Shown: positions 38,145 through 64,000 of the stretch, piece after piece
Position numbering within the stretch: position 1 is the first letter of the stretch
How the letters are laid out: every line of letters begins with the position of its first letter
Made by a program: the position numbers and the translations under genes
The notes under the pieces: model-generated
What the model was told of the DNA's origin: nothing
The model's database searches: none
Seen by the model: the letters and a program-made list of their open reading frames with translations, nothing else
NCBI GenBank assembly: GCA_950097015.1
Contig: CATNEN010000041.1
Location: 1,302,001-1,366,000 of the forward strand
Source: Macrostomum hystrix
Taxonomy: Eukaryota > Animalia > Platyhelminthes
DNA: 64,000 nt
Direction: 5' to 3'

Positions 38145-39732
38145 AGTTCTACTACTAGATCTAGCTGCAGTTCTACTACTAGATCTAGCTCCACTTCTGC
38201 TACTAGATCTAGCTCCACTTCTACTACTAGATCTAGCTCCACTTCTGCTACTAGATCTAGCCCCACTTCTACTACTAGATCTAGCTCCAGTTCTACTACT
38301 AGATCTAGCTCCACTTCTACTACTAGATCTAGCTCCACTTCTGCTACTAGATCTAGCCCCACTTCTACTACTAGATCTAGCTCCAGTTCTACTACTAGAT
38401 CTAGCTCCACTTCTACTACTAGATCTAGCTCCACTTCTGCTACTAGATCTAGCTCCACTTCTACTACTAGATCTAGCTCCAGTTCTACTATTAGATCTAG
38501 CTCCACTTCTACTACTAGATCTAGCTCCAGTTCTACTACTAGATCTAGCTCCAGTTCTACTACTAGATCTAGCTCCAGTTCTACTACTAGATCTAGCTCC
38601 AGTTCTACTACTAGATCTAGCTCCAGTTCTACTATTAGATCTAGCTCCAGTTCTACTACTAGATCTAGCTCCAGTTCTACTACTAGATCTAGCTCCACTT
38701 CTACTACTAGATCTAGCTCCAGTTCTACTACTAGATCTAGCTCCAGTTCTACTACTAGATCTAGCTCCACTTCTACTACTAGATCTAGCTCCACTTCTAC
38801 TACTAGATCTAGCTTCACTTCTACTACTAGATCTAGCTCCACTTCTGCTACTAGATCTAGCTCCACTTCTACTACTAGATCTAGCTCCAGTTCTGCTACT
38901 AGATCTAGCCCCACTTCTACTACTAGATCTAGCTCCAGTTCTACTACTAGATCTAGCTCCACTTCTACTACTAGATCTAGCTCCACTTCTACTATTAGAT
39001 CTAGCTCCACTTCTACTATTAGATCTAGCTCCACTTCTACTACTAGATCTAGCTCCACTTCTACTACTAGATCTAGCTCCAGTTCTACTACTAGATCTAG
39101 CTCCAGTTCTACTACTAGATCTAGCTCCACTTCTACTACTAGATCTAGCTCCACTTCTACTACTAGATCTAGCTCCACTTCTACTATTAGATCTAGCTGC
39201 AGTTCTACTACTAGATCTAGCTCCACTTCTACTACTAGATCTAGCTCCACTTCTACTACTAGATCTAGCTCCAGTTCTACTACTAGATCTAGCTCCAGTT
39301 CTACTACTAGATCTAGCTCCACTTCTACTACTAGATCTAGCTCCACTTCTACTACTAGATCTAGCTTCACTTCTACTACTAGATCTAGCTCCACTTCTAC
39401 TACTAGATCTAGCTCCACTTCTACTACTAGATCTAGCTTCACTTCTACTACTAGATCTAGCTCCACTTCTACTACTAGATCTAGCTCCACTTCTACTACT
39501 AGATCTAGCTCCAGTTCTGCTACTAGATCTAGCTCCACTTCTGCTACTAGATCTAGCTCCAGTTCTACTACTAGATCTAGCTCCAGTTCTACTACTAGAT
39601 CTAGCCCCACTTCTACTACAAGATCTAGCTCCAGTTCTACTACTAGATCTAGCTCCACTTCTACTACTAGATCTAGCTCCAGTTCTACTATTAGATCTAG
39701 CTGCAGTTCTACTACTAGATCTAGCTGCAGTT
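38145..39732. repeat. 24-bp minisatellite (ACTAGATCTAGCTCCA(C/G)TTCTACT)n, ~66 units
   Basis: Direct repetition; each unit carries the palindrome TAGATCTA. Lies just past the putative poly(A) signal of the giant gene. Confidence 0.95.
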
Positions 39733-39754
39733 CTTGTCGTTTTGTAATCATTAT

Positions 39755-39760
39755 TTTATT
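39755..39760 (-). promoter_or_regulatory. Putative poly(A) signal AATAAA of the giant Arg-rich gene
   Basis: AATAAA on the minus strand about 80 nt after the TAA at 39839. Confidence 0.55.
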
Positions 39761-39838
39761 TCCAACGCCAGTCCCAGATCTTCTTCGAGCTTAGGTCTGT
39801 ATCTATATAAAAAAGCAGTGCCTCACTTTTTCGCTGCA

Positions 39839-42800
39839 TTAATTCTTGGTCTCAGTGATGACCGGGCCAGTGCTGGTCTCCGTGATGACAGGACCAGTCT
39901 GGGTGATGACAGGACCAGTGCTGGTCTCCGTGATGACCGGGCCAGTGCTGGTCTCCGTGATGACAGGACCAGTCTGGGTGATGACAGGGCCAGTGCTGGT
40001 CTCAGTCCAGGAGGTGGATCCGTCAGGGTTGACTGTCTTCACAGTCTCTGCAAGGCAAAGGGGCGATAGGCATTTGGTTTCAATTAATAAAATTGAACCA
40101 ATCTGGCAAGCATTATTTCCGCTGGAAAACTCACTGGTTGCGCCACCAGAACTGCTCATTTTTGTGCTCGATGTTCCACCTGTAAGTTCAAAATGTTCGA
40201 CCAAGTTATCAAGAGGCCCATATTAGACTGTCTATGCGGGAATGCGGGCATGGCAAGGCGGTAACTCACCTCCGCCACCGACGGTCTTCGAAGCGGACCA
40301 GCCGGAGTTTCCTGTGCTTGACTTGGTCTCCGTTGTCAGTGGGCCTGCAGTCGGGAAAATCAAAATTTGAGTTTTGAATTTAAACTTTGATTCACGAAAG
40401 TTCCACGCGTTCACACGAACATATGGTTTTCTTTTTGTGTAGATTTGATTTGACGTGTACAGAAAGCGCAAGGCGATAATTTACCAAGTTGTTGGCAAAA
40501 TACTCACCGTTGATGACTTGCGACGAAGAAGTCTCAGTCCAAGAGATGGAGCCGTCAGGGTTTACAGTCTTGACCATTTCTGAAAAGCGAGTTCTCTAAT
40601 GTGAGAATGGTCTCTCAATGGATTTTCAACTCCTCTAGCAAATAATTCCTTGTGGTCCTAAATATTTCGGGATGATGAGACTCACTGGAACCGGCTCCAT
40701 GAGACTGACTGCTTCCAGAGCTGGTCGATGATCCACCTAAAAGGCAAAGGTTTCATGCTTAAAAAGCGAACAAACAGTGGGCCTTGGTTTTTAGGCCTTG
40801 GTACAGCCCATGAAAAGAAAAGCCGAAAAGATTTCCTAATTAATGACGGGAACAGTCTTAACTCCGCACTTACTTGAGCTGACACCGGAGTGGCTCACTG
40901 TTTTTGATGTGGTTGCTGCGCCGCCTGTAGAGAAATAAAGATTACATCTGATTTAGCCAATCACAGCAAGGCGACGTTTATCGAAGCGTAAGAGAAAACT
41001 CATTTCTACCTCCAACGGTCTTCCAGGCTGACCAGCCAGCATTTCCAGTGCTAGACTTGGTCTGCGTGATGATTGGTCCTGCATGTTACGGCAAACGGTT
41101 GCCCAAATTTAGGAAAGTATCCATAGTGAGGCAGTGGCTTGAACTGAACGACATTCTTAGAGGAAGTCAGAGTCTCATTTACTGTACCAGCCCCTACACC
41201 AACGGGAAATCAATTCTACGTAGGATAACAGAAACCAGTCACAGAATTTGTCGCCACTGACGAATCAAGTTTAATAATTCTCCAAGATTTGTGACCCGAG
41301 TCTCAGAGACGCGGACTCACCATTTGTCACGTCGGAAGAAGTCTCAGTCCAGGAAATGGATCCATCAGGGTTGACAGTCTTGGTGACTTCTAAAAGTGAA
41401 AATTAAAAACATAGCTCATTGCTCTTTATTAGTGAAAAACTGTGGAAAGATTCGCTCGATGCATGGCGTCGCAATTCACTCACTGGTCTTTCCTGCAATG
41501 CCATTCGGAATTGATCTCGAGGCTAAAAAATACACGTGGGGAATCTCATTTCCACGCGTTAAATTTGTATCCACTACTATAGAGGAATAATATACATACT
41601 TGTTGAGCTCGTTCCATGTCCACCGATTGCAACTACTCCACCGTCTAAAAGGCAAAAACGTTTTTCGTAATCACTATGATTACCATAAAAATGCGGACAC
41701 TTTAAATAAAAACGACCGAGATTCTTACCGATGACCTTTGTTTCACCAGGAACGGTTTCTCTGATGGTTTCTGAAAAAAGAAACAAAGCATTGACGAAAG
41801 AGTGCCCCAAAATTATGCACTTGAAAAAAGTTGAAGTCTCACGAGTTACGACTTACGAGTCTCAGTTGTCTCGGGGCCATTCAATGTAATAACACCTCCA
41901 TCTAGATTTTGCGTTAAAAAATATGTTCGAAAAAACTAGTCACGTCAGGCACAGGGTGTAACTCAAAAATGTAACCGCAAAATGTCTAGAAAAGATTCTC
42001 ACCAATTGTGTCAACAGCCTCCAATATGAGTGTTTTGAATTCAGTGTTATACAGCCAATTTTGCTGTGAAATAATGTCGCTGAAAATGTTCTTCGCTCTA
42101 GCAACTTTTGCCTTAAGACCAGACGTCACGCTCGAAAGGCCAGATTGCAAAATTGACCTGCTCCGCTTAACAAGCAGCTCAAATTTGGGACCAGACATCT
42201 TCAGTCTTCTCTTAAGTGCCAAAAGTCGAAGTCTGAGCTTCTCCTGCAAAGCCTTAATTTTATGCACTGGAACCTTCCGAGACGATCGAAGAACTCTTTT
42301 AGCAACACGCTCAACGCGAGATCGTCTCAGAGAACGCTTACCAACGATTTGTTGAATTGCAATCCCAACTTTAATCCTTGGCTGCCGCTTCAAAATCTTA
42401 CGAATACTAGTCCGCAGATGCAGCTGCCTTTTTACTGCCTTCTTTTTCAAACGCAAAATATGACGTACCCGGGTCAAAACCGACACGCGACGATTCAAGC
42501 CACGTATACGATGATACACACTACGGGAAAGACGCGGCAAAACAACTCGATTACCCGGTACAAAAGATCGTCTCACTACAACGGAAGATTTGCGACGCCG
42601 TACACGTCTAAGACCAACAGACGGTCTGATGACTCGTCGGATCACTCTTCGCCTCCTCACGATGCGTCTGCGTCGCATGATGCGTCGGATGATGCGTCGT
42701 CGGCGGATGACTCGTCGGCGTCCAATGAATCCTCGGATTACTCGTCGCCTCCTCACGATGCGTCTGCGTCGCACGATGCGTCGGATGATGCGTCGTCGGC

Positions 42801-45800
42801 GGATCACTCGTCGGATCACTCTTCGTCTCCTCACGATGCGTCTTCTTCGCACAATGCGTCGGATGATGCGTCGTCGGCGGATGACTCGTCGGCGTCTGAT
42901 GACTCGTCGGATCACTCGTCGTCTCCTCACGATGCGTCTTCTTCGCACAATGCGTCGGATGATGCGTCGTCGGCGGATGACTCGTCGGAGTCCGATGACT
43001 CGTCGGATCACTCGTCGCCTCCTCACGATGCGTCTGACAATCCTTCTTCGCACAATTTTCCTTCTGAGCACCTTGCTTGCCACTCGGCGTCCAGCGATCT
43101 TTCTGATAAATCTTCTCGTTCTCGGAATGAGTTTACGGATTACTCTGCGTCTAACAATCTTTCGTCTGACAACGCGGCGGACAATCTTTCGCTTTCTAAC
43201 GACCAGACGCTTGATTCGTCTAATCTGGCGTTTTCGTCTAAAGACGCAGACGGAGATGCGTCGACGGAGGTATCGGCGCCTAATAGAGTTCTTCACTATT
43301 CTGCGCTTCAGGGTCACGCGTCGTCTCCTGAGTTTAAAGATTCTCGATGTGCAAATGGAAATGCGCCTGACAAGGCGGCGAATGCGGAATGTGGTTCGCC
43401 TAACGCGTCGCCTCACCCGCCTTACAACACGCTTCACAACTCTGCGGCGGACGACTTTGCGGCGAACGATTTTGCGGCGAACGACCCTGCGCCTGATGAC
43501 TTTTCGCTGGATTCTTAGCCTCCTCACGCGTCTAATCAAGCGGGTGCGGCGAACGCGAACGGCTGTAATTCTGCGCAACAGAATGCGTCGCCTCACCCTA
43601 AGCTTCACAGCACGACGTTTCAGAACAATACGCCTCCTGAAAATTCTGCGGACTCGACGTCTAATAACAACATGCCTGCGAATAACCCGCCGAATCTTAC
43701 GATACACACGCCTGACTCGTCGGACGACTCGAGTTACCACACGGCGTACTACGCGACGTCGAACAACGCGTCTGATGATGCGTCGTCGGCGGATGACTCG
43801 TCGGAATCCGATGACTCGTCGGATCACTCGTCGCCTCCTCACGATGCGTCTTCTTCGCACAATGCGTCGGATGATGCGTCGTCGGCGGAAGACTCTTCGG
43901 CGTCTGATGACTCGTCGGATCACTCGTCGCCTCCTCACGATGCGTCTTCTTCGCACAATGCGTCGGATGATGCGTCGTCGGCGGATGACTCGTCGGCGTC
44001 TGATGACTCGTCGGATCACTCGTCGCCTCCTCACGATACGTCTTCTTCGCACAACGCGTCGGATGATGCGTCGGCGGCGGATGACTCGTCGGAGTCCGAT
44101 GACTCGTCGGATCACTCGTCGCCTCCTCACGATGCGTCTTCTTCGTACAATGCGTCGGATGATGCGTCGTCGGCGGATGACTCGTCGGCGTCTGATGACT
44201 CGTCGGATCACTCGTCGCCTCCTCACGATGCGTCTCCGTGGAACGATGCGTCGGATGACTCTTCGGCGTCTGATGACTCGTCGGATCACTCGTCGCCTCC
44301 TCACGATGCGTCTTCTTCGCACAATGCGTCGGATGATGCGTCGGCGGCGGATGACTCGTCGGAGTCCGATGACTCGTCGGATCACTCGTCGCCTCCTCAC
44401 GATACGTCTTCTTTGCACAATGCGTCGGATGATGCGTCGTCGGCGGATGACTCGTCGGAGTCCGATGACTCGTCGGATCACTCGTCGCCTCCTCACGATG
44501 CGTCTTCTTCGCACAATACGTCGGATGATGCGTCGTCGGCGGATGACTCGTCGGCGTCTGATGACTCGTCGGATCACTCGTCGCCTCCTCAAGATGCGTC
44601 TTCTTCGCACAATGCGTCGGATGATGCGTCGTCGGCGGATGACTCGTCGGAGTCCGATGACTCGTCGGATCACTCGTCGCCTCCTCACGATGCGTCTTCT
44701 TCGCACAATGCGTCGGATGATGCGTCGTCGGCGGATGACTCTTCGGCGTCTGATGACTCGTCGGATCACTCGTCGTCTCCTCACGATGCGTCTTCTTCGC
44801 ACAATGCGTCGGATGATGCGTCGTCGGCGGATGACTCGTCGGAGTCCGATGACTCGTCGGATCACTCGTCGCCTCCTCACGATGCGTCTTCTTCGCACAA
44901 TGCGTCGGATGACGCGTCGTCGGCGGATGACTCGTCGGAGTCCGATGACTCGTCGGATCACTCGTCGCCTCCTCACGATGCGTCTTCTTCGCACAATGCG
45001 TCGGATGATGCGTCGGCGGCGGATGACTCGTCGGAGTCCGATGACTCGTCGGATCACTCGTCGCCTCCTCACGATGCGTCTGACAATCCTTCTTCGCACA
45101 ATTTTCCTTCTGAGCACCTTGCTTGCCACTCGACGTCCAGCGATCTTTCTGATAAATCTTCTCGTTCTCGGAATGAGTTTACGGATTACTCTGCGTCTAA
45201 CAATCTTTCGTCTGACAACGCGGCGGACAATCTTTCGCTTTCTAACGACCAGACGCTTGATTCGTCTAATCTGGCGTTTTCGTCTAAAGACGCAGACGGA
45301 GATGCGTCGTCGGAGGTATCGGCGCCTAATAGAGTTCTTCACTATTCTGCGCTTCAGGGTCACGCGTCGTCTCCTGAGTTTAAAGATTCTCGATGTGCAA
45401 ATGGAAATGCGCCTGACAAGGCGGCGAATGCGGAAGGTGGTTCGCCTAACGCGTCGCCTCACCCGCCTTACAACACGCTTCACAACTCTGCGGCGGACGA
45501 CTTTGCGGCGAACGATTTTGCGGCGAACGACCCTGCGCCTGATGACTTTTCGCTGGATTCTTAGCCTCCTCACGCGTCTAATCAAGCGGGTGCGGCGAAC
45601 GCGAACGGCTGTAATTCTGCGCAACAGAATGCGTCGCCTCACCCTAAGCTTCACAGCACGACGTTTCAGAACAATACGCCTCCTGAAAATTCTGCGGACT
45701 CGACGTCTAATAACAACATGCCTGCGAATAACCCGCCGAATCTTACGATACACACGCCTGACTCGTCGGACGACTCGAGTTACCACACGGCGTACTACGC

Positions 45801-48800
45801 GACGTCGAACAACGCGTCTGATGATGCGTCGTCGGCGGATGACTCGTTGGAATCCGATGACTCGTCGGATCACTCGTCGCCTCCTCACGATGCGTCTTCT
45901 TCGCACAATGCGTCGGATGATGCGTCGTCGGCGGAAGACTCTTCGGCGTCTGATGACTCGTCGGATCACTCGTCGCCTCCTCACGATGCGTCTTCTTCGC
46001 ACAATGCGTCGGATGATGCGTCGTCGGCGGATGACTCGTCGGCGTCTGATGACTCGTCGGATCACTCGTCGCCTCCTCACGATGCGTCTTCTTCGTACAA
46101 TGCGTCGGATGATGCGTCGTCGGCGGATGACTCGTCGGCGTCTGATGACTCGTCGGATCACTCGTCGCCTCCTCACGATACGTCTTCTTCGCACAATGCG
46201 TCGGATGATGCGTCGGCGGCGGATGACTCGTCGGAGTCCGATGACTCGTCGGATCACTCGTCGCCTCCTCACGATGCGTCTTCTTCGCACAATGCGTCGG
46301 ATGATGCGTCGTCGGCGGATGACTCTTCGGCGTCTGATGACTCGTCGGATCACTCGTCGCCTCCTCACGATGCGTCTCCGTGGAACGATGCGTCGGATGA
46401 CTCGTCGGCGTCTGATGACTCGTCGGATCACTCGTCGCCTCCTCACGATGCGTCTTCTTCGCACAATGCGTCGGATGATGCGTCGTCGGCGGATGACTCG
46501 TCGGCGTCTGATGACTCGTCGGATCACTCGTCGCCTCCTCACGATGCGTCTTCTTCGTACAATGCGTCGGATGATGCGTCGTCGGCGGATGACTCGTCGG
46601 AGTCCGATGACTCGTCGGATCACTCGTCGCCTCCTCACGATGCGTCTTCTTCGCACAATGCGTCGGATGATGCGTCGTCGGCGGATGACTCGTCGGCGTC
46701 TGATGACTCGTCGGATCACTCGTCGTCTCCTCACGATGCGTCTTCTTCGCACAATGCGTCGGATGATGCGTCGTCGGCGGATGACTCGTCGGAGTCCGAT
46801 GACTCGTCGGATCACTCGTCGCCTCCTCACGATGCGTCTTCTTCGCACAATGCGTCGGATGACGCGTCGTCGGCGGATGATTCGTCGGAGTCCGATGACT
46901 CGTCGGATCACTCGTCGCCTCCTCACGATGCGTCTTCTTCGCACAATGCGTCGGATGATGCGTCGGCGGCGGATGACTCGTCGGAGTCCGATGACTCGTC
47001 GGATCACTCGTCGCCTCCTCACGATGCGTCTGACAATCCTTCTTCGCACAATTTTCCTTCTGAGCACCTTGCTTGCCACTCGACGTCCAGCGATCTTTCT
47101 GATAAATCTTCTCGTTCTCGGAATGAGTTTACGGATTACTCTGCGTCTAACAATCTTTCGTCTGACAACGCGGCGGACAATCTTTCGCTTTCTAACGACC
47201 AGACGCTTGATTCGTCTAATCTGGCGTTTTCGTCTAAAGACGCAGACGGAGATGCGTCGTCGGAGGTATCGGCGCCTAATAGAGTTCTTCACTATTCTGC
47301 GCTTCAGGGTCACGCGTCGTCTCCTGAGTTTAAAGATTCTCGATGTGCAAATGGAAATGCGCCTGACAAGGCGGCGAATGCGGAAGGTGGTTCGCCTAAC
47401 GCGTCGCCTCACCCGCCTTACAACACGCTTCACAACTCTGCGGCGGACGACTTTGCGGCGAACGATTTTGCGGCGAACGACCCTGCGCCTGATGACTTTT
47501 CGCTGGATTCTTAGCCTCCTCACGCGTCTAATCAAGCGGGTGCGGCGAACGCGAACGGCTGTAATTCTGCGCAACAGAATGCGTCGCCTCACCCTAAGCT
47601 TCACAGCACGACGTTTCAGAACAATACGCCTCCTGAAAATTCTGCGGACTCGACGTCTAATAACAACATGCCTGCGAATAACCCGCCGAATCTTACGATA
47701 CACACGCCTGACTCGTCGGACGACTCGAGTTACCACACGGCGTACTACGCGACGTCGAACAATGCGTCTGATGATGCGTCGTCGGCGGATGACTCGTCGG
47801 AATCCGATGACTCGTCGGATCACTCGTCGCCTCCTCACGATGCGTCTTCTTCGCACAATGCGTCGGATGATGCGTCGTCGGCGGAAGACTCTTCGGCGTC
47901 TGATGACTCGTCGGATCACTCGTCGCCTCCTCACGATGCGTCTTCTTCGCACAATGCGTCGGATGATGCGTCGTCGGCGGATGACTCGTCGGCGTCTGAT
48001 GACTCGTCGGATCACTCGTCGCCTCCTCACGATGCGTCTTCTTCGTACAATGCGTCGGATGATGCGTCGTCGGCGGATGACTCGTCGGCGTCTGATGACT
48101 CGTCGGATCACTCGTCGCCTCCTCACGATACGTCTTCTTCGCACAATGCGTCGGATGATGCGTCGGCGGCGGATGACTCGTCGGAGTCCGATGACTCGTC
48201 GGATCACTCGTCGCCTCCTCACGATGCGTCTTCTTCGCACAATGCGTCGGATGATGCGTCGTCGGCGGATGACTCTTCGGCGTCTGATGACTCGTCGGAT
48301 CACTCGTCGCCTCCTCACGATGCGTCTCCGTGGAACGATGCGTCGGATGACTCGTCGGCGTCTGATGACTCGTCGGATCACTCGTCGCCTCCTCACGATG
48401 CGTCTTCTTCGCACAATGCGTCGGATGATGCGTCGTCGGCGGATGACTCGTCGGCGTCTGATGACTCGTCGGATCACTCGTCGCCTCCTCACGATGCGTC
48501 TTCTTCGTACAATGCGTCGGATGATGCGTCGTCGGCGGATGACTCGTCGGAGTCCGATGACTCGTCGGATCACTCGTCGCCTCCTCACGATGCGTCTTCT
48601 TCGCACAATGCGTCGGATGATGCGTCGTCGGCGGATGACTCGTCGGCGTCTGATGACTCGTCGGATCACTCGTCGTCTCCTCACGATGCGTCTTCTTCGT
48701 ACAATGCGTCGGATGATGCGTCGTCGGCGGATGACTCGTCGGAGTCCGATGACTCGTCGGATCACTCGTCGCCTCCTCACGATGCGTCTTCTTCGCACAA

Positions 48801-51800
48801 TGCGTCGGATGACGCGTCGTCGGCGGATGACTCGTCGGAGTCCGATGACTCGTCGGATCACTCGTCGCCTCCTCACGATGCGTCTTCTTCGCACAATGCG
48901 CCGGATGATGCGTCGTCGGCGGATGACTCGTCGGCGTCTGATGACTCGTCGGATCACTCGTCGCCTCCTCACGATACGTCTTCTTCGCACAACGCGTCGG
49001 ATGATGCGTCGGCGGCGGATGACTCGTCGGAGTCCGATGACTCGTCGGATCACTCGTCGCCTCCTCACGATGCGTCTTCTTCGCACAATGCGTCGGATGA
49101 TGCGTCGTCGGCGGATGACTCGTCGGCGTCTGATGACTCGTCGGATCACTCGTCGCCTCCTCACGATGCGTCTCCGTGGAACGATGCGTCGGATGACTCG
49201 TCGGCGTCTGATGACTCGTCGGATCACTCGTCGTCTCCTCACGATGCGTCTTCTTCGCACAATGCGTCGGATGATGCGTCGTCGGCGGATGACTCGTCGG
49301 AGTCCGATGACTCGTCGGATCACTCGTCGCCTCCTCACGATACGTCTTCTTCGCACAATGCGTCGGATGATGCGTCGGCGGCGGATGACTCGTCGGAGTC
49401 CGATGACTCGTCGGATCACTCGTCGCCTCCTCACGATGCGTCTTCTTCGTACAATGCGTCGGATGATGCGTCGTCGGCGGATGACTCGTCGGCGTCTGAT
49501 GACTCGTCGGATCACTCGTCGCCTCCTCACGATGCGTCTTCTTCGCACAATGCGTCGGATGATGCGTCGTCGGCGGATGACTCGTCGGCGTCTGATGACT
49601 CGTCGGATCACTCGTCGCCTCCTCACGATGCGTCTTCTTCGTACAATGCGTCGGATGATGCGTCGTCGGCGGATGACTCGTCGGAGTCCGATGACTCGTC
49701 GGATCACTCGTCGCCTCCTCACGATGCGTCTTCTTCGCACAATGCGTCGGATGATGCGTCGTCGGCGGATGACTCGTCGGCGTCTGATGACTCGTCGGAT
49801 CACTCGTCGTCTCCTCACGATGCGTCTTCTTCGCACAATGCGTCGGATGATGCGTCGTCGGCGGATGACTCGTCGGAGTCCGATGACTCGTCGGATCACT
49901 CGTCGCCTCCTCACGATGCGTCTGACAATCCTTCTTCGCACAATTTTCCTTCTGAGCACCTTGCTTGCCACTCGACGTCCAGCGATCTTTCTGATAAATC
50001 TTCTCGTTCTCGGAATGAGTTTACGGATTACTCTGCGTCTAACAATCTTTCGTCTGACAACGCGGCGGACAATCTTTCGCTTTCTAACGACCAGACGCTT
50101 GATTCGTCTAATCTGGCGTTTTCGTCTAAAGACGCAGACGGAGATGCGTCGACGGAGGTATCGGCGCCTAATAGAGTTCTTCACTATTCTGCGCTTCAGG
50201 GTCACGCGTCGTCTCCTGAGTTTAAAGATTCTCGATGTGCAAATGGAAATGCGCCTGACAAGGCGGCGAATGCGGAAGGTGGTTCGCCTAACGCGTCGCC
50301 TCACCCGCCTTACAACACGCTTCACAACTCTGCGGCGGACGACTTTGCGGCGAACGATTTTGCGGCGAACGACCCTGCGCCTGATGACTTTTCGCTGGAT
50401 TCTTAGCCTCCTCACGCGTCTAATCAAGCGGGTGCGGCGAACGCGAACGGCTGTAATTCTGCGCAACAGAATGCGTCGCCTCACCCTAAGCTTCACAGCA
50501 CGACGTTTCAGAACAATACGCCTCCTGAAAATTCTGCGGACTCGACGTCTAATAACAACATGCCTGCGAATAACCCGCCGAATCTTACGATACACACGCC
50601 TGACTCGTCGGACGACTCGAGTTACCACACGGCGTACTACGCGACGTCGAACAACGCGTCTGATGATGCGTCGTCGGCGGATGACTCGTCGGAATCCGAT
50701 GACTCGTCGGATCACTCGTCGCCTCCTCACGATGCGTCTTCTTCGCACAATGCGTCGGATGATGCGTCGGCGGCGGATGACTCGTCGGAGTCCGATGACT
50801 CGTCGGATCACTCGTCGCCTCCTCACGATACGTCTTCTTCGCACAATGCGTCGGATGATGCGTCGTCGGCGGATGACTCGTCGGAGTCCGATGACTCGTC
50901 GGATCACTCGTCGCCTCCTCACGATGCGTCTTCTTCGCACAATACGTCGGATGATGCGTCGTCGGCGGATGACTCTTCGGCGTCTGATGACTCGTCGGAT
51001 CACTCGTCGCCTCCTCACGATGCGTCTTCTTCGCACAATGCGTCGGATGATGCGTCGTCGGCGGATGACTCGACGGAGTCCGATGACTCGTCGGATCACT
51101 CGTCGCCTCCTCACGATGCGTCTTCTTCGCACAATGCGTCGGATGATGCGTCGTCGGCGGATGACTCGTCGGCGTCTGATGACTCGTCGGATCACTCGTC
51201 GCCTCCTCACGATGCGTCTTCTTCGCACAATGCGTCGGATGATGCGTCGTCGGCGGATGACTCGTCGGCGTCTGATGACTCGTCGGATCACTCGTCGTCT
51301 CCTCACGATGCGTCTTCTTCGCACAATGCGTCGGATGATGCGTCGTCGGCGGATGACTCGTCGGAGTCCGATGACTCGTCGGATCACTCGTCGCCTCCTC
51401 ACGATGCGTCTTCTTCGCACAATGCGTCGGATGACGCGTCGTCGGCGGATGACTCGTCGGAGTCCGATGACTCGTCGGATCACTCGTCGCCTCCTCACGA
51501 TGCGTCTTCTTCGCACAATGCGTCGGATGATGCGTCGGCGGCGGATGACTCGTCGGAGTCCGATGACTCGTCGGATCACTCGTCGCCTCCTCACGATGCG
51601 TCTGACAATCCTTCTTCGCACAATTTTCCTTCTGAGCACCTTGCTTGCCACTCGACGTCCAGCGATCTTTCTGATAAATCTTCTCGTTCTCGGAATGAGT
51701 TTACGGATTACTCTGCGTCTAACAATCTTTCGTCTGACAACGCGGCGGACAATCTTTCGCTTTCTAACGACCAGACGCTTGATTCGTCTAATCTGGCGTT

Positions 51801-54800: not shown

Positions 54801-57800
54801 GGCGTCTGATGACTCGTCGGATCACTCGTCGCCTCCTCACGATGCGTCTCCGTGGAACGATGCGTCGGATGACTCGTCGGCGTCTGATGACTCGTCGGAT
54901 CACTCGTCGCCTCCTCACGATGCGTCTTCTTCGCACAATGCGTCGGATGATGCGTCGTCGGCGGATGACTCGTCGGCGTCTGATGACTCGTCGGATCACT
55001 CGTCGCCTCCTTACGATGCGTCTTCTTCGTACAATGCGTCGGATGATGCGTCGTCGGCGGATGACTCGTCGGAGTCCGATGACTCGTCGGATCACTCGTC
55101 GCCTCCTCACGATGCGTCTTCTTCGCACAATGCGTCGGATGATGCGTCGGCGGCGGATGACTCGTCGGCGTCTGATGACTCGTCGGATCACTCGTCGTCT
55201 CCTCACGATGCGTCTTCTTCGCACAATGCGTCGGATGATGCGTCGTCGGCGGATGACTCGTCGGAGTCCGATGACTCGTCGGATCACTCGTCGCCTCCTC
55301 ACGATGCGTCTTCTTCGCACAATGCGTCGGATGATGCGTCGTCGGCGGATGACTCGTCGGCGTCTGATGACTCGTCGGATCACTCGTCGTCTCCTCACGA
55401 TGCGTCTTCTTCGCACAATGCGTCGGATGATGCGTCGTCGGCGGATGACTCGTCGGAGTCCGATGACTCGTCGGATCACTCGTCGCCTCCTCACGATGCG
55501 TCTTCTTCGCACAATGCGTCGGATGACGCGTCGTCGGCGGATGACTCGTCGGAGTCCGATGACTCGTCGGATCACTCGTCGCCTCCTCACGATGCGTCTT
55601 CTTCGCACAATGCGTCGGATGATGCGTCGGCGGCGGATGACTCGTCGGAGTCCGATGACTCGTCGGATCACTCGTCGCCTCCTCACGATGCGTCTGACAA
55701 TCCTTCTTCGCACAATTTTCCTTCTGAGCACCTTGCTTGCCACTCGACGTCCAGCGATCTTTCTGATAAATCTTCTCGTTCTCGGAATGAGTTTACGGAT
55801 TACTCTGCGTCTAACAATCTTTCGTCTGACAACGCGGCGGACAATCTTTCGCTTTCTAACGACCAGACGCTTGATTCGTCTAATCTGGCGTTTTCGTCTA
55901 AAGACGCAGACGGAGATGCGTCGTCGGAGGTATCGGCGCCTAATAGAGTTCTTCACTATTCTGCGCTTCAGGGTCACGCGTCGTCTCCTGAGTTTAAAGA
56001 TTCTCGATGTGCAAATGGAAATGCGCCTGACAAGGCGGCGAATGCGGAAGGTGGTTCGCCTAACGCGTCGCCTCACCCGCCTTACAACACGCTTCACAAC
56101 TCTGCGGCGGACGACTTTGCGGCGAACGATTTTGCGGCGAACGACCCTGCGCCTGATGACTTTTCGCTGGATTCTTAGCCTCCTCACGCGTCTAATCAAG
56201 CGGGTGCGGCGAACGTGAACGGCTGTAATTCTGCGCAACAGAATGCGTCGCCTCACCCTAAGCTTCACAGCACGACGTTTCAGAACAATACGCCTCCTGA
56301 AAATTCTGCGGACTCGACGTCTAATAACAACATGCCTGCGAATAACCCGCCGAATCTTACGATACACACGCCTGACTCGTCGGACGACTCGAGTTACCAC
56401 ACGGCGTACTACGCGACGTCGAACAACGCGTCTGATGATGCGTCGTCGGCGGATGACTCGTCGGAATCCGATGACTCGTCGGATCACTCGTCGCCTCCTC
56501 ACGATGCGTCTTCTTCGCACAATGCGTCGGATGATGCGTCGTCGGCGGAAGACTCTTCGGCGTCTGATGACTCGTCGGATCACTCGTCGCCTCCTCACGA
56601 TGCGTCTTCTTCGTACAATGCGTCGGATGATGCGTCGTCGGCGGATGACTCGTCGGCGTCTGATGACTCGTCGGATCACTCGTCGCCTCCTCACGATACG
56701 TCTTCTTCGCACAATGCGTCGGATGATGCGTCGGCGGCGGATGACTCGTCGGAGTCCGATGACTCGTCGGATCACTCGTCGCCTCCTCACGATGCGTCTT
56801 CTTCGCACAATGCGTCGGATGATGCGTCGTCGGCGGATGACTCTTCGGCGTCTGATGACTCGTCGGATCACTCGTCGCCTCCTCACGATGCGTCTCCGTG
56901 GAACGATGCGTCGGATGACTCGTCGGCGTCTGATGACTCGTCGGATCACTCGTCGCCTCCTCACGATGCGTCTTCTTCGTACAATGCGTCGGATGATGCG
57001 TCGTCGGCGGATGACTCGTCGGCGTCTGATGACTCGTCGGATCACTCGTCGCCTCCTCACGATGCGTCTTCTTCGCACAATGCGTCGGATGATGCGTCGT
57101 CGGCGGATGACTCGTCGGAGTCCGATGACTCGTCGGATCACTCGTCGCCTCCTCACGATGCGTCTTCTTCGCACAATGCGTCGGATGATGCGTCGTCGGC
57201 GGATGACTCGTCGGAGTCCGATGACTCGTCGGATCACTCGTCGCCTCCTCACGATGCGTCTTCTTCGCACAATGCGTCGGATGATGCGTCGGCGGCGGAT
57301 GACTCGTCGGAGTCCGATGACTCGTCGGATCACTCGTCGTCTCCTCACGATGCGTCTTCTTCGCACAATGCGTCGGATGATGCGTCGTCGGCGGATGACT
57401 CTTCGGCGTCTGATGACTCGTCGGATCACTCGTCGCCTCCTCACGATGCGTCTCCGTGGAACGATGCGTCGGATGACTCGTCGGCGTCTGATGACTCGTC
57501 GGATCACTCGTCGCCTCCTCACGATGCGTCTTCTTCGCACAATGCGTCGGATGATGCGTCGTCGGCGGATGACTCGTCGGCGTCTGATGACTCGTCGGAT
57601 CTCTCGTCGCCTCCTCACGATGCGTCTTCTTCGTACAATGCGTCGGATGATGCGTCGTCGGCGGATGACTCGTCGGAGTCCGATGACTCGTCGGATCACT
57701 CGTCGCCTCCTCACGATGCGTCTTCTTCGCACAATGCGTCGGATGATGCGTCGTCGGCGGATGACTCGTCGGCGTCTGATGACTCGTCGGATCACTCGTC

Positions 57801-60800
57801 GTCTCCTCACGATGCGTCTTCTTCGCACAATGCGTCGGATGATGCGTCGTCGGCGGATGACTCGTCGGAGTCCGATGACTCGTCGGATCACTCGTCGCCT
57901 CCTCACGATGCGTCTTCTTCGCACAATGCGTCGGATGACGCGTCGTCGGCGGATGACTCGTCGGAGTCCGATGACTCGTCGGATCACTCGTCGCCTCCTC
58001 ACGATGCGTCTTCTTCGCACAATGCGTCGGATGATGCGTCGGCGGCGGATGACTCGTCGGCGTCTGATGACTCGTCGGATCACTCGTCGCCTCCTCACGA
58101 TACGTCTTCTTCGCACAATGCGTCGGATGATGCGTCGGCGGCGGATGACTCGTCGGAGTCCGATGACTCGTCGGATCACTCGTCGCCTCCTCACGATGCG
58201 TCTGACAATCCTTCTTCGCACAATTTTCCTTCTGAGCACCTTGCTTGCCACTCGGCGTCCAGCGATCTTTCTGATAAATCTTCTCGTTCTCGGAATGAGT
58301 TTACGGATTACTCTGCGTCTAACAATCTTTCGTCTGACAACGCGGCGGACAATCTTTCGCTTTCTAACGACCAGACGCTTGATTCGTCTAATCTGGCGTT
58401 TTCGTCTAAAGACGCAGACGGAGATGCGTCGTCGGAGGTATCGGCGCCTAATAGAGTTCTTCACTATTCTGCGCTTCAGGGTCACGCGTCGTCTCCTGAG
58501 TTTAAAGATTCTCGATGTGCAAATGGAAATGCGCCTGACAAGGCGGCGAATGCGGAAGGTGGTTCGCCTAACGCGTCGCCTCACCCGCCTTACAACACGC
58601 TTCACAACTCTGCGGCGGACGACTTTGCGGCGAACGATTTTGCGGCGAACGACCCTGCGCCTGATGACTTTTCGCTGGATTCTTAGCCTCCTCACGCGTC
58701 TAATCAAGCGGGTGCGGCGAACGCGAACGGCTGTAATTCTGCGCAACAGAATGCGTCGCCTCACCCTAAGCTTCACAGCACGACGTTTCAGAACAATACG
58801 CCTCCTGAAAATTCTGCGGACTCGACGTCTAATAACAACATGCCTGCGAATAACCCGCCGAATCTTACGATACACACGCCTGACTCGTCGGACGACTCGA
58901 GTTACCACACGGCGTACTACGCGACGTCGAACAACGCGTCTGATGATGCGTCGTCGGCGGATGACTCGTCGGACTCCGATGACTCGTCGGATCACTCTTC
59001 GCCTCCTCACGATGCGTCTGAGTGGCACGATGCGTCGGATGACTCGTCGGCGTCTGATGACTCGTCGGATCACTCGTCGTCTCCTCACGATGCGTCTTCT
59101 TCGTACAATGCGTCGGATGATGCGTCGTCGGCGGATGACTCGTCGGCGTCCGATGACTCGTCGGATCACTCGTCGCCTCCTCACGATGCGTCTTCTTCGC
59201 ACAATGCGTCGGATGATGCGTCGTCGGCGGAAGACTCGTCGGCGTCTGATGACTCGTCGGATCACTCGTCGCCTCCTCACGATGCGTCTTCTTCGTACAA
59301 TGCGTCGGATGATGCGTCGTCGGCGGATGACTCGTTGGCGTCTGATGACTCGTCGGATCACTCTTCGCCTCCTCACGATGCGTCTTCTTCGCACAATGCG
59401 TCGGATGATGCGTCGTCGGCGGATGACTCGTCGGAGTCCGATGACTCGTCGGATCACTCGTCGCCTCCTCACGATGCGTCTTCTTCGCACAATGCGTCGG
59501 ATGATGCGTCGTCGGCGGATGACTCGTCGGCGTCTGATGACTCGTCGGATCACTCTTCGCCTTCTCACGATGCGTCTGCGTGGCACGATGCGTCGGATGA
59601 TGCGTCGTCGGCGGATGACTCGTCGGCGTCTGATGACTCGTCGGATCACTCTTCGCCTTCTCACGATGCGTCTGCGTGGCACGATGCGTCGGATGACTCG
59701 TCGGCGTCTGATGACTCGTCGGATCACTCGTCGTCTCCGTACGATGCGTCTTCTTCGCACAATGCGTCGGATGATGCGTCGCCGGCGGATGACTCGTCGG
59801 CGTCTGATGACTCGTCGGATCACTCGTCGCCTCCTCACGATACGTCTTCTTCGCACAATGCGTCGGATGATGCGTCGGCGGCGGATGACTCGTCGGAGTC
59901 CGATGACTCGTCGGATCACTCGTCGCCTCCTCACGATGCGTCTGACAATCCTTCTTCGCACAATTTTCCTTCTGAGCACCTTGCTTGCCACTCGGCGTCC
60001 AGCGATCTTTCTGATAAATCTTCTCGTTCTCGGAATGAGTTTACGGATTACTCTGCGTCTAACAATCTTTCGTCTGACAACGCGGCGGACAATCTTTCGC
60101 TTTCTAACGACCAGACGCTTGATTCGTCTAATCTGGCGTTTTCGTCTAAAGACGCAGACGGAGATGCGTCGTCGGAGGTATCGGCGCCTAATAGAGTTCT
60201 TCACTATTCTGCGCTTCAGGGTCACGCGTCGTCTCCTGAGTTTAAAGATTCTCGATGTGCAAATGGAAATGCGCCTGACAAGGCGGCGAATGCGGAAGGT
60301 GGTTCGCCTAACGCGTCGCCTCACCCGCCTTACAACACGCTTCACAACTCTGCGGCGGACGACTTTGCGGCGAACGATTTTGCGGCGAACGACCCTGCGC
60401 CTGATGACTTTTCGCTGGATTCTTAGCCTCCTCACGCGTCTAATCAAGCGGGTGCGGCGAACGCGAACGGCTGTAATTCTGCGCAACAGAATGCGTCGCC
60501 TCACCCTAAGCTTCACAGCACGACGTTTCAGAACAATACGCCTCCTGAAAATTCTGCGGACTCGACGTCTAATAACAACATGCCTGCGAATAACCCGCCG
60601 AATCTTACGATACACACGCCTGACTCGTCGGACGACTCGAGTTACCACACGGCGTACTACGCGACGTCGAACAACGCGTCTGATGATGCGTCGTCGGCGG
60701 ATGACTCGTCGGACTCCGATGACTCGTCGGATCACTCTTCGCCTCCTCACGATGCGTCTGAGTGGCACGATGCGTCGGATGACCCGTCGGCGTCTGATGA

Positions 60801-63800
60801 CTCGTCGGATCACTCGTCGTCTCCTCACGATGCGTCTTCTTCGCACAATGCGTCGGATGATGCGTCGTCGGCGGATGACTCGTCGGCGTCCGATGACTCG
60901 TCGGATCACTCGTCGCCTCCTCACGATGCGTCTTCTTCGCACAATGCGTCGGATGATGCGTCGTCGGCGGAAGACTCGTCGGCGTCTGATGACTCGTCGG
61001 ATCACTCGTCGCCTCCTCACGATGCGTCTTCTTCGTACAATGCGTCGGATGATGCGTCGTCGGCGGATGACTCGTTGGCGTCTGATGACTCGTCGGATCA
61101 CTCGTCGCCTCCTCACGATGCGTCTTCTTCGCACAATGCGTCGGATGATGCGTCGTCGGCGGATGACTCGTCGGAGTCCGATGACTCGTCGGATCACTCG
61201 TCGCCTCCTCACGATGCGTCTTCTTCGCACAATGCGTCGGATGATGCGTCGTCGGCGGATGACTCGTCGGCGTCTGATGACTCGTCGGATCACTCTTCGC
61301 CTTCTCACGATGCGTCTGCGTGGCACGATGCGTCGGATGATGCGTCGTCGGCGGATGACTCGTCGGCGTCTGATGACTCGTCGGATCACTCTTCGCCTTC
61401 TCACGATGCGTCTGCGTGGCACGATGCGTCGGATGACTCGTCGGCGTCTGATGACTCGTCGGATCACTCGTCGTCTCCGTACGATGCGTCTTCTTCGCAC
61501 AATGCGTCGGATGATGCGTCGCCGGCGGATGACTCGTCGGCGTCTGATGACTCGTCGGATCACTCGTCGCCTCCTCACGATGTGTCTGCGTGGCACGATG
61601 CGTCGGATGATGCGTCGGCGGCGGATGACTCGTCGGAGTCCGATGACTCGTCGGATCACTCGTCGCCTCCTCACGATGCGTCTTCTTCGCACAATGCGTC
61701 GGATGATGCGTCGTCGGCGGATGACTCGTCGGCGTCTGATGACTCGTCGGATCACTCGTCGTCTCCTCACGATGCGTCTTCTTCGTACAATGCGTCGGAT
61801 GATGCGTCGTCGGCGGATGACTCGTCGGAGTCCGATGACTCGTCGGATCACTCGTCGCCTCCTCACGATGCGTCTGCGTGGCACGATGCGTCGGATGACT
61901 CGTCGGCGTCTGATGACTCGTCGGATCACTCGTCGTCTCCTCACGATGCGTCTTCTTCGCACAATGCGTCGGATGATGCGTCGCCGGCGGATGACTCGTC
62001 GGCGTCTGATGACTCGTCGGATCACTCGTCGCCTCCTCACGATGTGTCTGCGTGGCACGATGCGTCGGATGATGCGTCGGCGGCGGATGACTCGTCGGAG
62101 TCCGATGACTCGTCGGATCACTCGTCGCCTCCTCACGATGCGTCTTCTTCGCACAATGCGTCGGATGATGCGTCGTCGGCGGATGACTCGTCGGAGTCCG
62201 ATGACTCGTCGGATCACTCGTCGCCTCCTCACGATGCGTCTTCTTCGCACAATGCGTCGGATGATGCGTCGTCGGTGGATGACTCGTCGGCGTCTGATGA
62301 CTCGTCGGATCACTCGTCGTCTCCTCACGATGCGTCTTCTTCGCACAATGCGTCGGATGATGCGTCGTCGGCGGATGACTCGTCGGCGTCCGATGACTCG
62401 TCGGATCACTCGTCGCCTCCTCACGATGCGTCTGACAATCCTTCTTCGCACAATTTTCCTTCTGAGCACCTTGCTTGCCACTAGGCGTCCAGCGATCTTT
62501 CTGATAAATCTTCTCGTTCTCGGAATGAGTTTACGGATTACTCTGCGTCTAACAATCTTTCGTCTGACAACGCGGCGGACAATCTTTCGCTTTCTAACGA
62601 CCAGACGCTTGATTCGTCTAATCTGGCGTTTTCGTCTAAAGACGCAGACGGAGATGCGTCGTCGGAGGTATCGGCGCCTAATAGAGTTCTTCACTATTCT
62701 GCGCTTCAGGGTCACGCGTCGTCTCCTGAGTTTAAAGATTCTCGATGTGCAAATGGAAATGCGCCTGACAAGGCGGCGAATGCGGAATGTGGTTCGCCTA
62801 ACGCGTCGCCTCACCCGCCTTACAACACGCCTCACAACTCTGCGGCGGACGACTTTGCGGCGAACGATTTTGCGGCGAACGACCCTGCGCCTGATGACTT
62901 TTCGCTGGATTCTTAGCCTCCTCACGCGTCTAATCAAGCGGGTGCGGCGAACGCGAACGGCTGTAATTCTGCGCAACAGAATGCGTCGCCTCACCCTAAG
63001 CTTCACAGCACGACGTTTCAGAACAATACGCCTCCTGAAAATTCTGCGGACTCGACGTCTAATAACAACATGCCTGCGAATAACCCGCCGAATCTTACGA
63101 TACACACGCCTGACTCGTCGGACGACTCGAGTTACCACACGGCGTACTACGCGACGTCGAACAACGCGTCTGATGATGCGTCGTCGGCGGATGACTCGTC
63201 GGACTCCGATGACTCGTCGGATCACTCTTCGCCTCCTCACGATGCGTCTGAGTGGCACGATGCGTCGGATGACTCGTCGGCGTCTGATGACTCGTCGGAT
63301 CACTCGTCGTCTCCTCACGATGCGTCTTCTTCGCACAATGCGTCGGATGATGCGTCGTCGGCGGATGACTCGTCGGAGTCCGATGACTCGTCGGATCACT
63401 CGTCGCCTCCTCACGATGCGTCTTCTTCGCACAATGCGTCGGATGATGCGTCGTCGGCGGATGACTCGTCGGCGTCTGATGACTCGTCGGATCACTCTTC
63501 GCCTTCTCACGATGCGTCTGCGTGGCACGATGCGTCGGATGACTCGTCGGCGTCTGATGACTCGTCGGATCACTCGTCGTCTCCTCACGATGCGTCTTCT
63601 TCGCACAATGCGTCGGATGATGCGTCGCCGGCGGATGACTCGTCGGCGTCTGATGACTCGTCGGATCACTCGTCGTCTCCTCACGATGCGTCTTCTTCGC
63701 ACAATGCGTCGGATGATGCGTCGTCGGCGGATGACTCGTCGGAGTCCGATGACTCGTCGGATCACTCGTCGCCTCCTCACGATGCGTCTTCTTCGCACAA

Positions 63801-64000
63801 TGCGTCGGATGATGCGTCGTCGGCGGATGACTCGTCGGAGTCCGATGACTCGTCGGATCACTCGTCGTCTCCTCACGATGCGTCTTCTTCGTACAATGCG
63901 TCGGATGATGCGTCGTCGGCGGATGACTCTTCGGCGTCTGATGACTCGTCGGATCACTCTTCGCCTTCTCACGATGCGTCTGCGTGGCACGATGCGTCGG
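39839..64000 (-). CDS. Giant Arg/Ile/Val-rich repetitive protein (>7500 aa; N-terminus beyond the window) with a micro-exon-encoded Gly/Ser/Thr-rich C-terminal tail
   Basis: Frame open from the window edge to a donor at 42003 (DTI-G/gtgaga). Then exons 41770-41729, 41644-41600, 41522-41484, 41389-41321, 41078-41010, 40924-40874, 40736-40686, 40579-40508, 40344-40270, 40179-40135 (all GT-AG, phase 1, lengths multiples of 3) and terminal exon 40047-39839 ending ...GPVITETKN*. No recognisable family. Confidence 0.8.
42620..64000. repeat. Coding nested tandem array: 96-bp units interspersed with ten ~740-bp blocks
   Basis: Blocks start (+ coordinates) at about 43033, 45080, 47030, 49921, 51601, 53551, 55693, 58201, 59941 and 62431; runs of 96-bp and 78-bp units lie between them. 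Confidence 0.95.

Follow-up and report, generated by a model that had tools for sequence, protein, structure and literature searches.

Does a minus-strand reading frame of more than 7,300 codons, half of them for arginine, in a 64-kb window of Macrostomum hystrix DNA (the whole stretch analysed) encode a protein, and what would such a protein do? The original prediction, made from the letters alone, took it for a real gene with a spliced Ser/Thr/Gly-rich tail and not for an open frame in a satellite. Our re-analysis agrees: RNA splicing, a contig running from tail to array, a codon signature and a 58%-identical homologue in M. lignano together make it very probable that this is a genuine minus-strand coding gene in the Arg/Ile/Val frame. 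The statement as a whole, a coding gene whose product is a secreted giant polycation, we hold at a probability of roughly 0.6, while the proposed secretory mechanism, taken by itself, is tentative.

Gene structure and transcription

The minus-strand frame is stop-free from 63999 to 41989 (7,337 codons), which reproduces the claimed run of more than 7,300 codons to 42003, where exon 1 leaves the frame at its donor; none of the other frames is fully open across the array. Exon 1 measures at least 22 kb, and the visible part of the gene is bounded by the window edge at 64000, with the N-terminus beyond the 64-kb window. Its frame encodes 52% Arg and 35% Ile/Val (R 3,836, I 1,294, V 1,252) with about 1% Gly, and the predicted near absence of acidic residues holds (D 2, E 7). 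The bulk of the exon is a repeat array (42622–64000, running past the window edge) whose units and spacers are covered by RNA contigs. It passes into a 206-aa K/R/L/V-rich segment (42003–42621, its codons at 42004–42621) that is non-repetitive, as described at the outset, and ends on a donor GT (42002–42001) used in RNA. A 45-nt micro-exon (41857–41901) follows, and then ten micro-exons within 40135–41770, each a multiple of 3 nt long (41729–41770, 41600–41644, 41484–41522, 41321–41389, 41010–41078, 40874–40924, 40686–40736, 40508–40579, 40270–40344 and 40135–40179), all defined by RNA joints. The last coding exon (39839–40047) ends at a TAA stop (39841–39839) and is followed by a 3′UTR in two forms (37950–39838). 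All of these features lie on the minus strand. Splicing into downstream exons and the stop had thus been read correctly, but the exons number 12, not 11. The rebuilt spliced coding sequence is open for 7,602 aa, with a predicted mass of ~1.0 MDa, a predicted net charge of about +4,000 for the visible product and residue shares of 50.5% Arg and 3.0% Lys; in the spliced tail the coding frame alone is open, the two alternative frames holding 18 and 30 stops.

RNA evidence came from unstranded assembled contigs of eight runs, seven of which contain minus-strand GT–AG introns (12 in total). All twelve joints, seen on the plus strand as CT..AC, occur in runs X1, X4 and X10, and subsets of them in X5, X6, X7 and X8. 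Splicing from 42003 to the downstream exons, a point on which the gene reading depended, is therefore seen as GT–AG joints in RNA; the partner proposed for this donor, 41770, was wrong, as the overlooked 45-nt exon lies between them (joint 41901>42003 in X1, X4, X10 and X7; joint 41770>41857 in X1, X4 and X10). A 1,405-nt contig (X1, record 2) extends from 39959 through the splices and the unique segment to 42715, within the array. Continuity of tail and array in RNA reaches this position, and we infer the strand of the array from its linkage to the spliced 3′ part.

RNA from the array is abundant. The spacer is covered unspliced, fully or nearly so, by contigs of 816–834 nt in X1, X4 and X5 and of 715 nt in X10, and depth in intron bins is 0–11 against 500 in exons, so that carry-over of DNA is negligible. 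Relative to single-copy exons, the spacer contig has 5 times the depth in X10 and about 8 times in X5; in X1 and X4 it has only 1.2–1.6 times the depth of unique exons, where at least 10 times would be expected, and this low value could be due to 3′ bias or to shorter transcripts.

Array architecture and the coding frame

Rather than a simple repeat, the array forms a series of ten higher-order units of 1.7–2.9 kb each. Its basic repeat unit is 32 aa long (96 bp, with 78-bp variants) and follows the grammar R4-xx-R4-xx-R2-xx, taken twice, in which xx is an Ile/Val pair; the resulting 20 Arg and 12 Ile/Val per unit match the composition first given for the core unit. Each higher-order unit holds one non-periodic spacer of 241 codons, rich in R/K/I/V/L. 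The spacer nearest the 3′ end lies at 43036–43758 on the minus strand, and the near-identical copies 2–10 lie on the same strand at 45082–45804, 47032–47754, 49924–50646, 51604–52326, 53554–54276, 55696–56418, 58204–58926, 59944–60666 and 62434–63156, with seven variants in total among the ten copies. Length variants are all multiples of 3 nt (18, 75, and 78 versus 96). The longest basic run is four residues over 7,332 aa, a cap that was seen in 92 of 20,000 spacer shuffles, and basic runs give way directly to Ile or Val in 1,215 of 1,339 cases. This four-residue cap may be what permits ribosomal translation. In single-sequence AlphaFold models, six repeat units showed no fold (pLDDT 48) and the 206-aa segment was weakly helical at low confidence (pLDDT 59). 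Comparison with the spacers ruled out that this segment is a diverged spacer copy.

Open frames by themselves prove little for this array, because two plus-strand frames are also nearly open (a single stop in 21.5 kb in plus frame 1, one per higher-order unit in plus frame 0), a property that the Arg plus Ile/Val composition itself brings about. Codon use settles the frame, and shows that the Arg/Ile/Val frame has been shaped by selection. Within the non-redundant spacer of 241 codons, 103 of the 110 plus-frame Ser, Ala, Pro and Thr codons are antisense Arg codons, compared with a share of 25.7% in reference ORFs (P = 7e-52). All six Arg codons are used in the minus frame of the spacer (18, 32, 3, 12, 21 and 18 times), and the entropy of its three codon positions is 1.78, 1.66 and 1.99 bits, the third being near uniform. 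Variants within the array give an omega of ~0.54 for the minus frame (P = 0.027) and ~0.86 for the plus-strand Ser/Asp frame, in tests of low power among nearly identical higher-order units. Two substitutions had been singled out as creating plus-strand stops while being only missense in the minus frame. Both are real, with Arg>His at 56216 and Arg>Leu at 62482, but the TAG at 62482 is not the sole one in plus frame 0, where every higher-order unit has a conserved TAG.

Alternative readings

A non-coding satellite with frames open through composition, perhaps inflated by the assembly, would account for the near identity of the units and for three of six frames being open or nearly so. It is highly improbable, given that the array is joined in frame to conserved coding exons, bears the codon-level Arg signature with its near-uniform third positions, varies in length by multiples of 3 nt and is abundantly represented in RNA. 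The slightest chance goes to a plus-strand product, a Ser/Asp-rich acidic protein whose frame would be antisense to that of Arg codon for codon. Plus frame 0 does stay open for ~560–960 codons per stretch and resembles an acidic biomineral or phosphoprotein repeat, but we rejected this candidate on three grounds: its codon use is impossible (Ser nearly all TCG/TCT, Ala GCG, Pro CCT, Thr ACG), the conserved TAG of each higher-order unit is removed by no splice, and the introns are all on the minus strand. In this frame, moreover, the spacer variants are 0 synonymous and 7 non-synonymous, one of them a stop. Better placed, though still quite unlikely, is an array that is transcribed and left untranslated, whether as non-coding RNA or as a very long 5′ leader, with a short C-terminal protein starting at ATG 42678 or 42198. 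Stalling of ribosomes on polybasic tracts and the low spacer-to-unique depth ratio in X1 and X4 would suit it. The codon signature of the spacer nevertheless requires selection on Arg in the minus frame, conservation in M. lignano reaches upstream of 42198, ATG 42678 is a single variant within one repeat unit, the leader would hold at least 10 out-of-frame ATGs, and the short product would carry a mucin-like tail with no signal peptide ahead of it.

Two further readings accept translation of the Arg frame and differ in the fate of the product. As a polyprotein precursor, it would be cut by convertases at RRRR sites to free short cationic Arg/Ile/Val peptides, perhaps with antimicrobial or cell-penetrating activity. 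Multibasic sites number in the hundreds, and antimicrobial peptides typically combine Arg with aliphatic residues. Cleavage at every Arg run, on the other hand, would yield di- to hexapeptides; the Ile or Val that follows most basic runs would stand at P1′, where these residues disfavour furin-type cleavage; and the visible sequence contains no discrete peptide units with flanking sites of their own, the spacers sharing the composition of the repeats. We consider this precursor unlikely, and improbable an intracellular polycation of the protamine type that packs sperm or chromatin and is not secreted. The latter would fit the extreme, protamine-like Arg content and an N-terminus beyond the window, yet protamines span tens to a few hundred residues, against at least 7,602 aa here, and a tail rich in Ser/Thr/Gly is what glycosylated extracellular proteins typically have.

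Database relatives

The similarity search proposed for the unique segment and tail returned one relative, the M. lignano protein A0A1I8JLP0, which is 58% identical over residues 77–205 of the 206-aa segment (E = 1.6e-35) and shares DGGV, GWSxWKTV and KTVxPDGSxSWTETS modules with segment and tail. The alignment extends upstream of the sole nearby Met, the one at 42198, which is Leu in the relative. This 185-aa entry bears the automatic name N-acetylmuramoyl-L-alanine amidase, for which Pfam gave no support; as a gene model it is truncated, beginning where the array would be, and its sequence would suit either an orthologue or a paralogue of the giant gene. The giant gene itself is absent from protein databases, where its sole relative is truncated and misnamed. 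Whole-library phmmer and word-seeded protein searches gave no relative besides A0A1I8JLP0, with HMMER suppressing low-complexity matches, and word-seeded searches with 366-aa and 2,000-aa queries gave no match. Pfam searches of the unique segment, spacer, last exon and window-edge piece yielded nothing significant, and the WSC domain (PF01822) was not found by Pfam in any visible piece of the protein, the 400 aa next to the window edge among them. A PDB sequence search found no match and the ESM Atlas no look-alike above 0.58. RNA reads searched at 80% likeness for a diverged orthologue came from the same species only, at low depth, and Rfam, tRNA and bacterial promoter/terminator scans gave nothing informative. 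A metagenome contig (L001) matching a 20-mer of the unit was dismissed as a chance bacterial match.

Comparison with known polycations

Mlig-ap1, at 5,407 aa, is the nearest case by genus: it too is a very large basic protein, in its case a secretory one, for which charge interaction with polyanions has been proposed. This cohesive adhesive protein of M. lignano contains more than 3,600 aa of extremely basic low-complexity sequence, and its KR regions have been confirmed by antibody, mass spectrometry and RNAi (PMC6410801). The two proteins are distinct, as originally argued. Mlig-ap1 uses motifs such as SRKPRRKNRKSRKP in basic regions rich in Lys/Arg, and its C-type lectin, vWD/C8/TIL and EGF domains are all absent from the visible giant protein, where Lys makes up just 3% and strict Arg runs are parted by Ile/Val pairs.

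The claim that the polycation is undescribed goes a little too far, since giant polycations that stand alone and consist almost entirely of low-complexity repeats have precedents in the adhesive glands of flatworms, where ap3 (Tmed-ap3, Mile-ap3a/b) is expressed from long repetitive exons that are likewise beyond short-read assembly. Tmed-ap3 has 3,700 aa, a pI of 13.2 and a signal peptide (PMC9229212), and on knock-down of Mile-ap3 the adhesive vesicles lose their dense core (PMC6745481). The ap3 proteins differ in their Gly/Arg/Lys/His/Ser makeup, which is without a hydrophobic partner residue; the giant protein is at least twice as long, with a conserved C-terminal segment and the Ser/Thr/Gly tail in addition. 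Its composition also departs from the Lys/Arg/Gly dominance of flatworm adhesive polycations. Library searches, with low-complexity matches suppressed by HMMER, detected no similarity to ap1 or ap3, which were compared by description. Judged by its composition, the giant protein is basic, yet built differently from the ap1 KR regions and ap3. The giant gene, itself unannotated, would be an extreme version of the secretory polycations of flatworm glue.

The cement of sabellariid tube worms pairs polybasic with polyphosphoserine proteins. It offers a model of charge-driven polycation–polyanion condensation in a granule that sets after release, although its polycations are small, Lys/Gly/Tyr-rich, unrelated in sequence and from another phylum. 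Polybasic proteins of this cement are the subject of PMC12621633. Protamines, poly-PR and poly-GR share an Arg content of ~50% or more and raise the same questions of stalling and toxicity (PMC9830226). Protamines, however, are tiny nuclear proteins and the dipeptide repeats pathological products, whereas the giant gene has abundant spliced mRNA, more than 7,300 such codons and basic runs capped at four.

A putative secreted polycation

In the reading that we prefer, translation would start upstream of the window and the product, of at least 7,600 aa, would be secreted. Because its Arg runs would bind sulphated or phosphorylated polyanions, and its Ile/Val pairs would supply cohesive contacts once charge is neutralised, the polycation would condense into a dense secretory-granule matrix that on release would form a gel, glue or mucus. 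Such condensation is modelled on proposals for the K/R-rich Mlig-ap1 and ap3. Somewhat more speculative is the stronger form of this reading, that the entire frame of more than 7,600 codons yields one secreted chain of about a megadalton (~+4,000) serving as the main cationic matrix of rhabdite, cement or adhesive granules. Its grammar would then have evolved for handling by the ribosome and the secretory pathway, with at most four basic residues in a row and an Ile/Val pair after every run, a suggestion we offer equally tentatively. Against translation of the array speaks the documented stalling of ribosomes on Arg-rich repeats (PMC9830226, PMC5534433).

If translated as read, the product would rank with the natural proteins of highest Arg content and highest charge described so far, in an animal where RNAi and in situ hybridisation can be used to test such proteins. 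It would provide a natural test case of ribosomes coping with thousands of polybasic codons, a matter that bears on ribosome quality control and on the toxicity of Arg-rich repeat proteins. It would also add an Arg-plus-aliphatic design to the Lys/Arg/Gly repeats known among flatworm secretory polycations, and offer researchers on coacervates and adhesives a ready-made ‘sticker and spacer’ sequence.

Tail and 3′UTR forms

The tail comprises 270 aa and is Ser/Thr/Gly-rich (T 21%, S 17%, G 15%, P 5%), its micro-exons encoding repeated KTVNPDGSxSWTETS and GWSxxKTVGGG modules. Set beside the Ser/Thr/Pro tandem repeats that are the hallmark of mucins, it has TGPVIT(E/Q)T repeats, in the last coding exon, at this Pro content. 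One RNA run contains a 75-nt repeat-copy variant of that exon. The AATAAA noted after the stop is present at 39760–39755 and serves the unspliced 3′UTR form, but it is spliced away in part of the RNA. In the spliced form, a 1,749-nt intron (donor GT 39826–39825, acceptor AG ending at 38078) takes out a 24-bp satellite at 38147–39734, and the AATAAA at 37973–37968 is used; the splice was recognised from loose contig ends at 39825 in X10 and X6 that match 38046–38075 exactly.

Structure and transcription of the gene

A stop-free minus-strand frame of 7,337 codons (63999 to 41989; R 3,836, I 1,294, V 1,252, only two Asp and seven Glu) reads through a nested tandem array between about 42620 and the window edge. 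It is built from 96-bp units with some 78-bp variants, organized into ten higher-order units of 1,680–2,892 bp that each contain one non-periodic 723-bp spacer. The frame, its composition and the 32-aa unit, (R4-xx-R4-xx-R2-xx)x2 with xx an Ile/Val pair, agree with the original prediction, and the two substitutions it singled out are real: both create plus-strand stops and read in the minus frame as Arg>His (56216) and Arg>Leu (62482). Because all repeat lengths are multiples of three, duplication of a unit preserves the frame. Two plus-strand frames are nearly open as well. Plus frame 1 (Arg/Thr/Leu/Met) contains a single stop over 21.5 kb, and plus frame 0, antisense to the Arg frame codon for codon, gives an acidic Ser/Asp/Ala/His/Pro reading with one conserved TAG in each higher-order unit. 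A protein built from Arg, whose codons have G in the middle, and Ile/Val, whose codons have T there, automatically leaves these plus frames with hardly any stops, and an open frame by itself is weak evidence of coding at the array.

The RNA data are assembled contigs without direction, in which splice joints are still readable. Twelve joints with CT..AC on the plus strand (GT..AG on the minus strand) were recovered in RNA runs X1, X4 and X10, and subsets of them in X5, X6, X7 and X8 from other studies. Splicing from donor 42003 to the downstream exons, as had been predicted, is present in RNA, although the predicted exon model lacked one exon: the donor joins a 45-nt exon (41857–41901), which then joins 41770. 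The Arg frame runs on through eleven micro-exons (45, 42, 45, 39, 69, 69, 51, 51, 72, 75 and 45 nt) into a last exon with TAA at 39841–39839, yielding a predicted visible product of 7,602 aa in the coding sequence rebuilt from these joints; its N-terminus lies beyond the window edge. An alternative minus-strand 3'UTR intron of 1,749 nt (38078–39826), seen in contigs of two runs that join 39827 to 38077, begins 13 nt past the stop codon and takes out an entire 24-bp satellite (38147–39734) together with the first AATAAA.

Continuity between tail and array is documented by a 1,405-nt X1 contig that runs from the last exon, with introns spliced, through the 206-aa unique segment at the 3' end of exon 1 to 42715 inside the array. 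Its X4 counterpart (1,349 nt) ends barely inside the array at 42659, and an X10 contig of 892 nt over the unique segment and array start extends to 42653; ends just inside the array are expected where repeats break the assembly graph. An intron bin in X10 has a depth of 0–11 versus about 500 in exons, so the libraries contain little DNA. Unspliced contigs of 816–834 nt cover the entire spacer in X1, X4 and X5, and a 715-nt contig covers nearly all of it in X10. Spacer depth relative to a single-copy exon is 5x in X10, about 8x in X5 and only 1.2–1.6x in X1 and X4, ratios which, given at least ten spacer copies per mRNA, are compatible with full-length transcripts and a 3' bias of varying strength but fall short of proof.

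The reading frame under selection

In the unique segment and tail the Arg frame alone is open, the other two frames carrying 18 and 30 stops. For the array, the 241-codon spacer, lacking a simple repeat structure, was chosen as the best test piece. Its plus Ser/Asp reading encodes Ser by TCG/TCT in 38 of 42 codons, Ala by GCG in 32 of 35, Pro by CCT/CCG in 21 of 21 and Thr by ACG in 12 of 12; altogether 103 of these 110 codons are exact reverse complements of Arg codons, against 25.7% in a reference set made up of the C-type lectin ORFs in the window plus the tail exons (P = 7e-52). At the same positions the minus frame uses all six Arg codons (CGA 18, CGC 32, CGG 3, CGT 12, AGA 21, AGG 18), and base use in the spacer is nearly uniform at the third codon position (entropy 1.99 bits) versus 1.78 bits at the first and 1.66 at the second. 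Under plus-frame coding with ordinary codon usage, each spacer should contain about 7 stops in the minus frame, and none is observed (P = 5e-4); conversely, one plus-frame stop is observed versus 2.2 expected if the minus frame codes.

The array is very homogeneous, so variants among its copies are few. For the minus frame, repeat and spacer variants divide into 22 synonymous and 25 non-synonymous changes, an omega of about 0.54 (P = 0.027); the plus Ser/Asp frame has an omega of about 0.86, with 0 of 7 spacer variants synonymous and one variant a stop. Length variants in genome or RNA (18, 75, and 78 versus 96) are all multiples of 3 nt. The gene, its strand, splicing and reading frame are shown. 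Relative to the spacer/array boundary at 43771–43780, RNA contigs from three runs have six extra codons, an 18-nt insertion; copies or alleles thus differ in length while staying in frame.

A conserved C-terminal part

A full HMMER scan over 1.8 billion representative proteins returned one real relative, the 185-aa Macrostomum lignano entry UniRef A0A1I8JLP0 (E = 1.6e-35, 58% identity). The alignment begins at residue 77 of the unique segment, crosses the exon junction and enters the tail modules, sharing DGGV, GWSxWKTV and KTVxPDGSxSWTETS; the C-terminal part is therefore a conserved protein. A0A1I8JLP0, a truncated gene model, would be an orthologue or family member in a second Macrostomum species. 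Its automatic name (N-acetylmuramoyl-L-alanine amidase) found no support in a Pfam scan of the entry. The only in-frame ATGs of exon 1 within the window lie at 42198 and 42678, the latter a single variant inside one repeat unit, and a short protein starting at Met 42198 might alone be made. This reading loses support, since that Met is Leu in A0A1I8JLP0 and conservation continues upstream of 42198.

The tail itself has 270 aa, is Thr/Ser/Gly-rich (pI 6.4) and contains three KTVNPDGSxSWTETS / GWSxxKTVGGG modules plus TGPVIT(E/Q)T repeats. An X6 metatranscriptome contig lacks 75 nt (25 codons; 39855–39929) of the last-exon TGPVIT(E/Q)T repeat, an in-frame copy-number variant rather than a splice.

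Predicted protein and possible role

The visible predicted protein has a mass of about 1.0 MDa, 50.5% Arg and a net charge of about +4037. Over 7,332 residues the longest basic run is four, a cap that in the spacer was matched by just 92 of 20,000 shuffles, and Val or Ile directly follows a basic run of at least two residues in 1,215 of 1,339 cases. In AlphaFold models made without an alignment, six repeat units showed no fold (pLDDT 48) and the unique segment formed weak helices (pLDDT 59), and searches of Pfam, PDB and ESM Atlas returned no match. Since ribosomes stall on polybasic and Arg-rich repeats, the cap may make translation easier. An aliphatic residue directly behind a basic run would be unfavourable for cleavage by furin-type enzymes.

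Giant low-complexity polycations are a known kind of component in flatworm secretions, and the predicted protein belongs among them. The nearest precedents are the adhesive polycations Mlig-ap1, Tmed-ap3 and Mile-ap3. Mlig-ap1, with more than 3,600 aa of K/R-rich sequence, was shown to be secreted and required for adhesion, and has been proposed to bind partners of negative charge (PMC6410801); Tmed-ap3, 3,700 aa long and with a pI of 13.2, is a polycation that stands alone and has a signal peptide (PMC9229212); and the electron-dense core of adhesive vesicles is lost upon Mile-ap3 knock-down (PMC6745481). The predicted protein differs from Mlig-ap1 and the ap3 proteins in composition, motifs and domains, and sequence searches detected similarity to nothing but the one M. 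lignano model. Its size, Arg-only basic charge and strict grammar of Arg runs and aliphatic pairs are unusual, as is a gene with an exon of more than 22 kb that is absent from the annotation.

Beyond gene, strand, splicing and frame, what we propose for this protein is inferred. By analogy with the adhesive polycations, it may be secreted and may condense, together with sulphated glycans or another type of polyanion, to form the dense matrix of a granule. Upon release it would form or cross-link a gel, and Ile/Val pairs could give cohesion after charges are paired. Planarian rhabdites hold sulphated glycosaminoglycans (PMC5450325) and come from acidophilic precursor cells (PMC3001876), which makes rhabdite or other gland secretions candidate sites; the data favour no particular tissue.

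Genomic surroundings and samples

In two long ORFs, at 4621–7645 on the minus strand and 19836–24312 on the plus strand, C-type lectin domains follow one another in series (Pfam PF00059, with E-values down to 1e-61). Both are probably large genes for secreted multi-lectin proteins that flank the polycation gene. A minus-strand Alg9-like mannosyltransferase (GT22) exon (28219–28938) and metallo-beta-lactamase-fold ORF (30511–31386) look like ordinary neighbours. Positions 1–38000 are unusually rich in further tandem repeats, several yielding long incidental ORFs, including (AGTTC)n at 14876–16249 and repeats of 8 bp (3031–3520), 14 bp (34509–35040) and 25 bp (16455–16844). Runs X5, X6 and X9, labelled sediment metatranscriptomes, contain transcripts of this flatworm that are 99–100% identical and, in X5 and X6, spliced; those sediment samples therefore included either the animal or its RNA.
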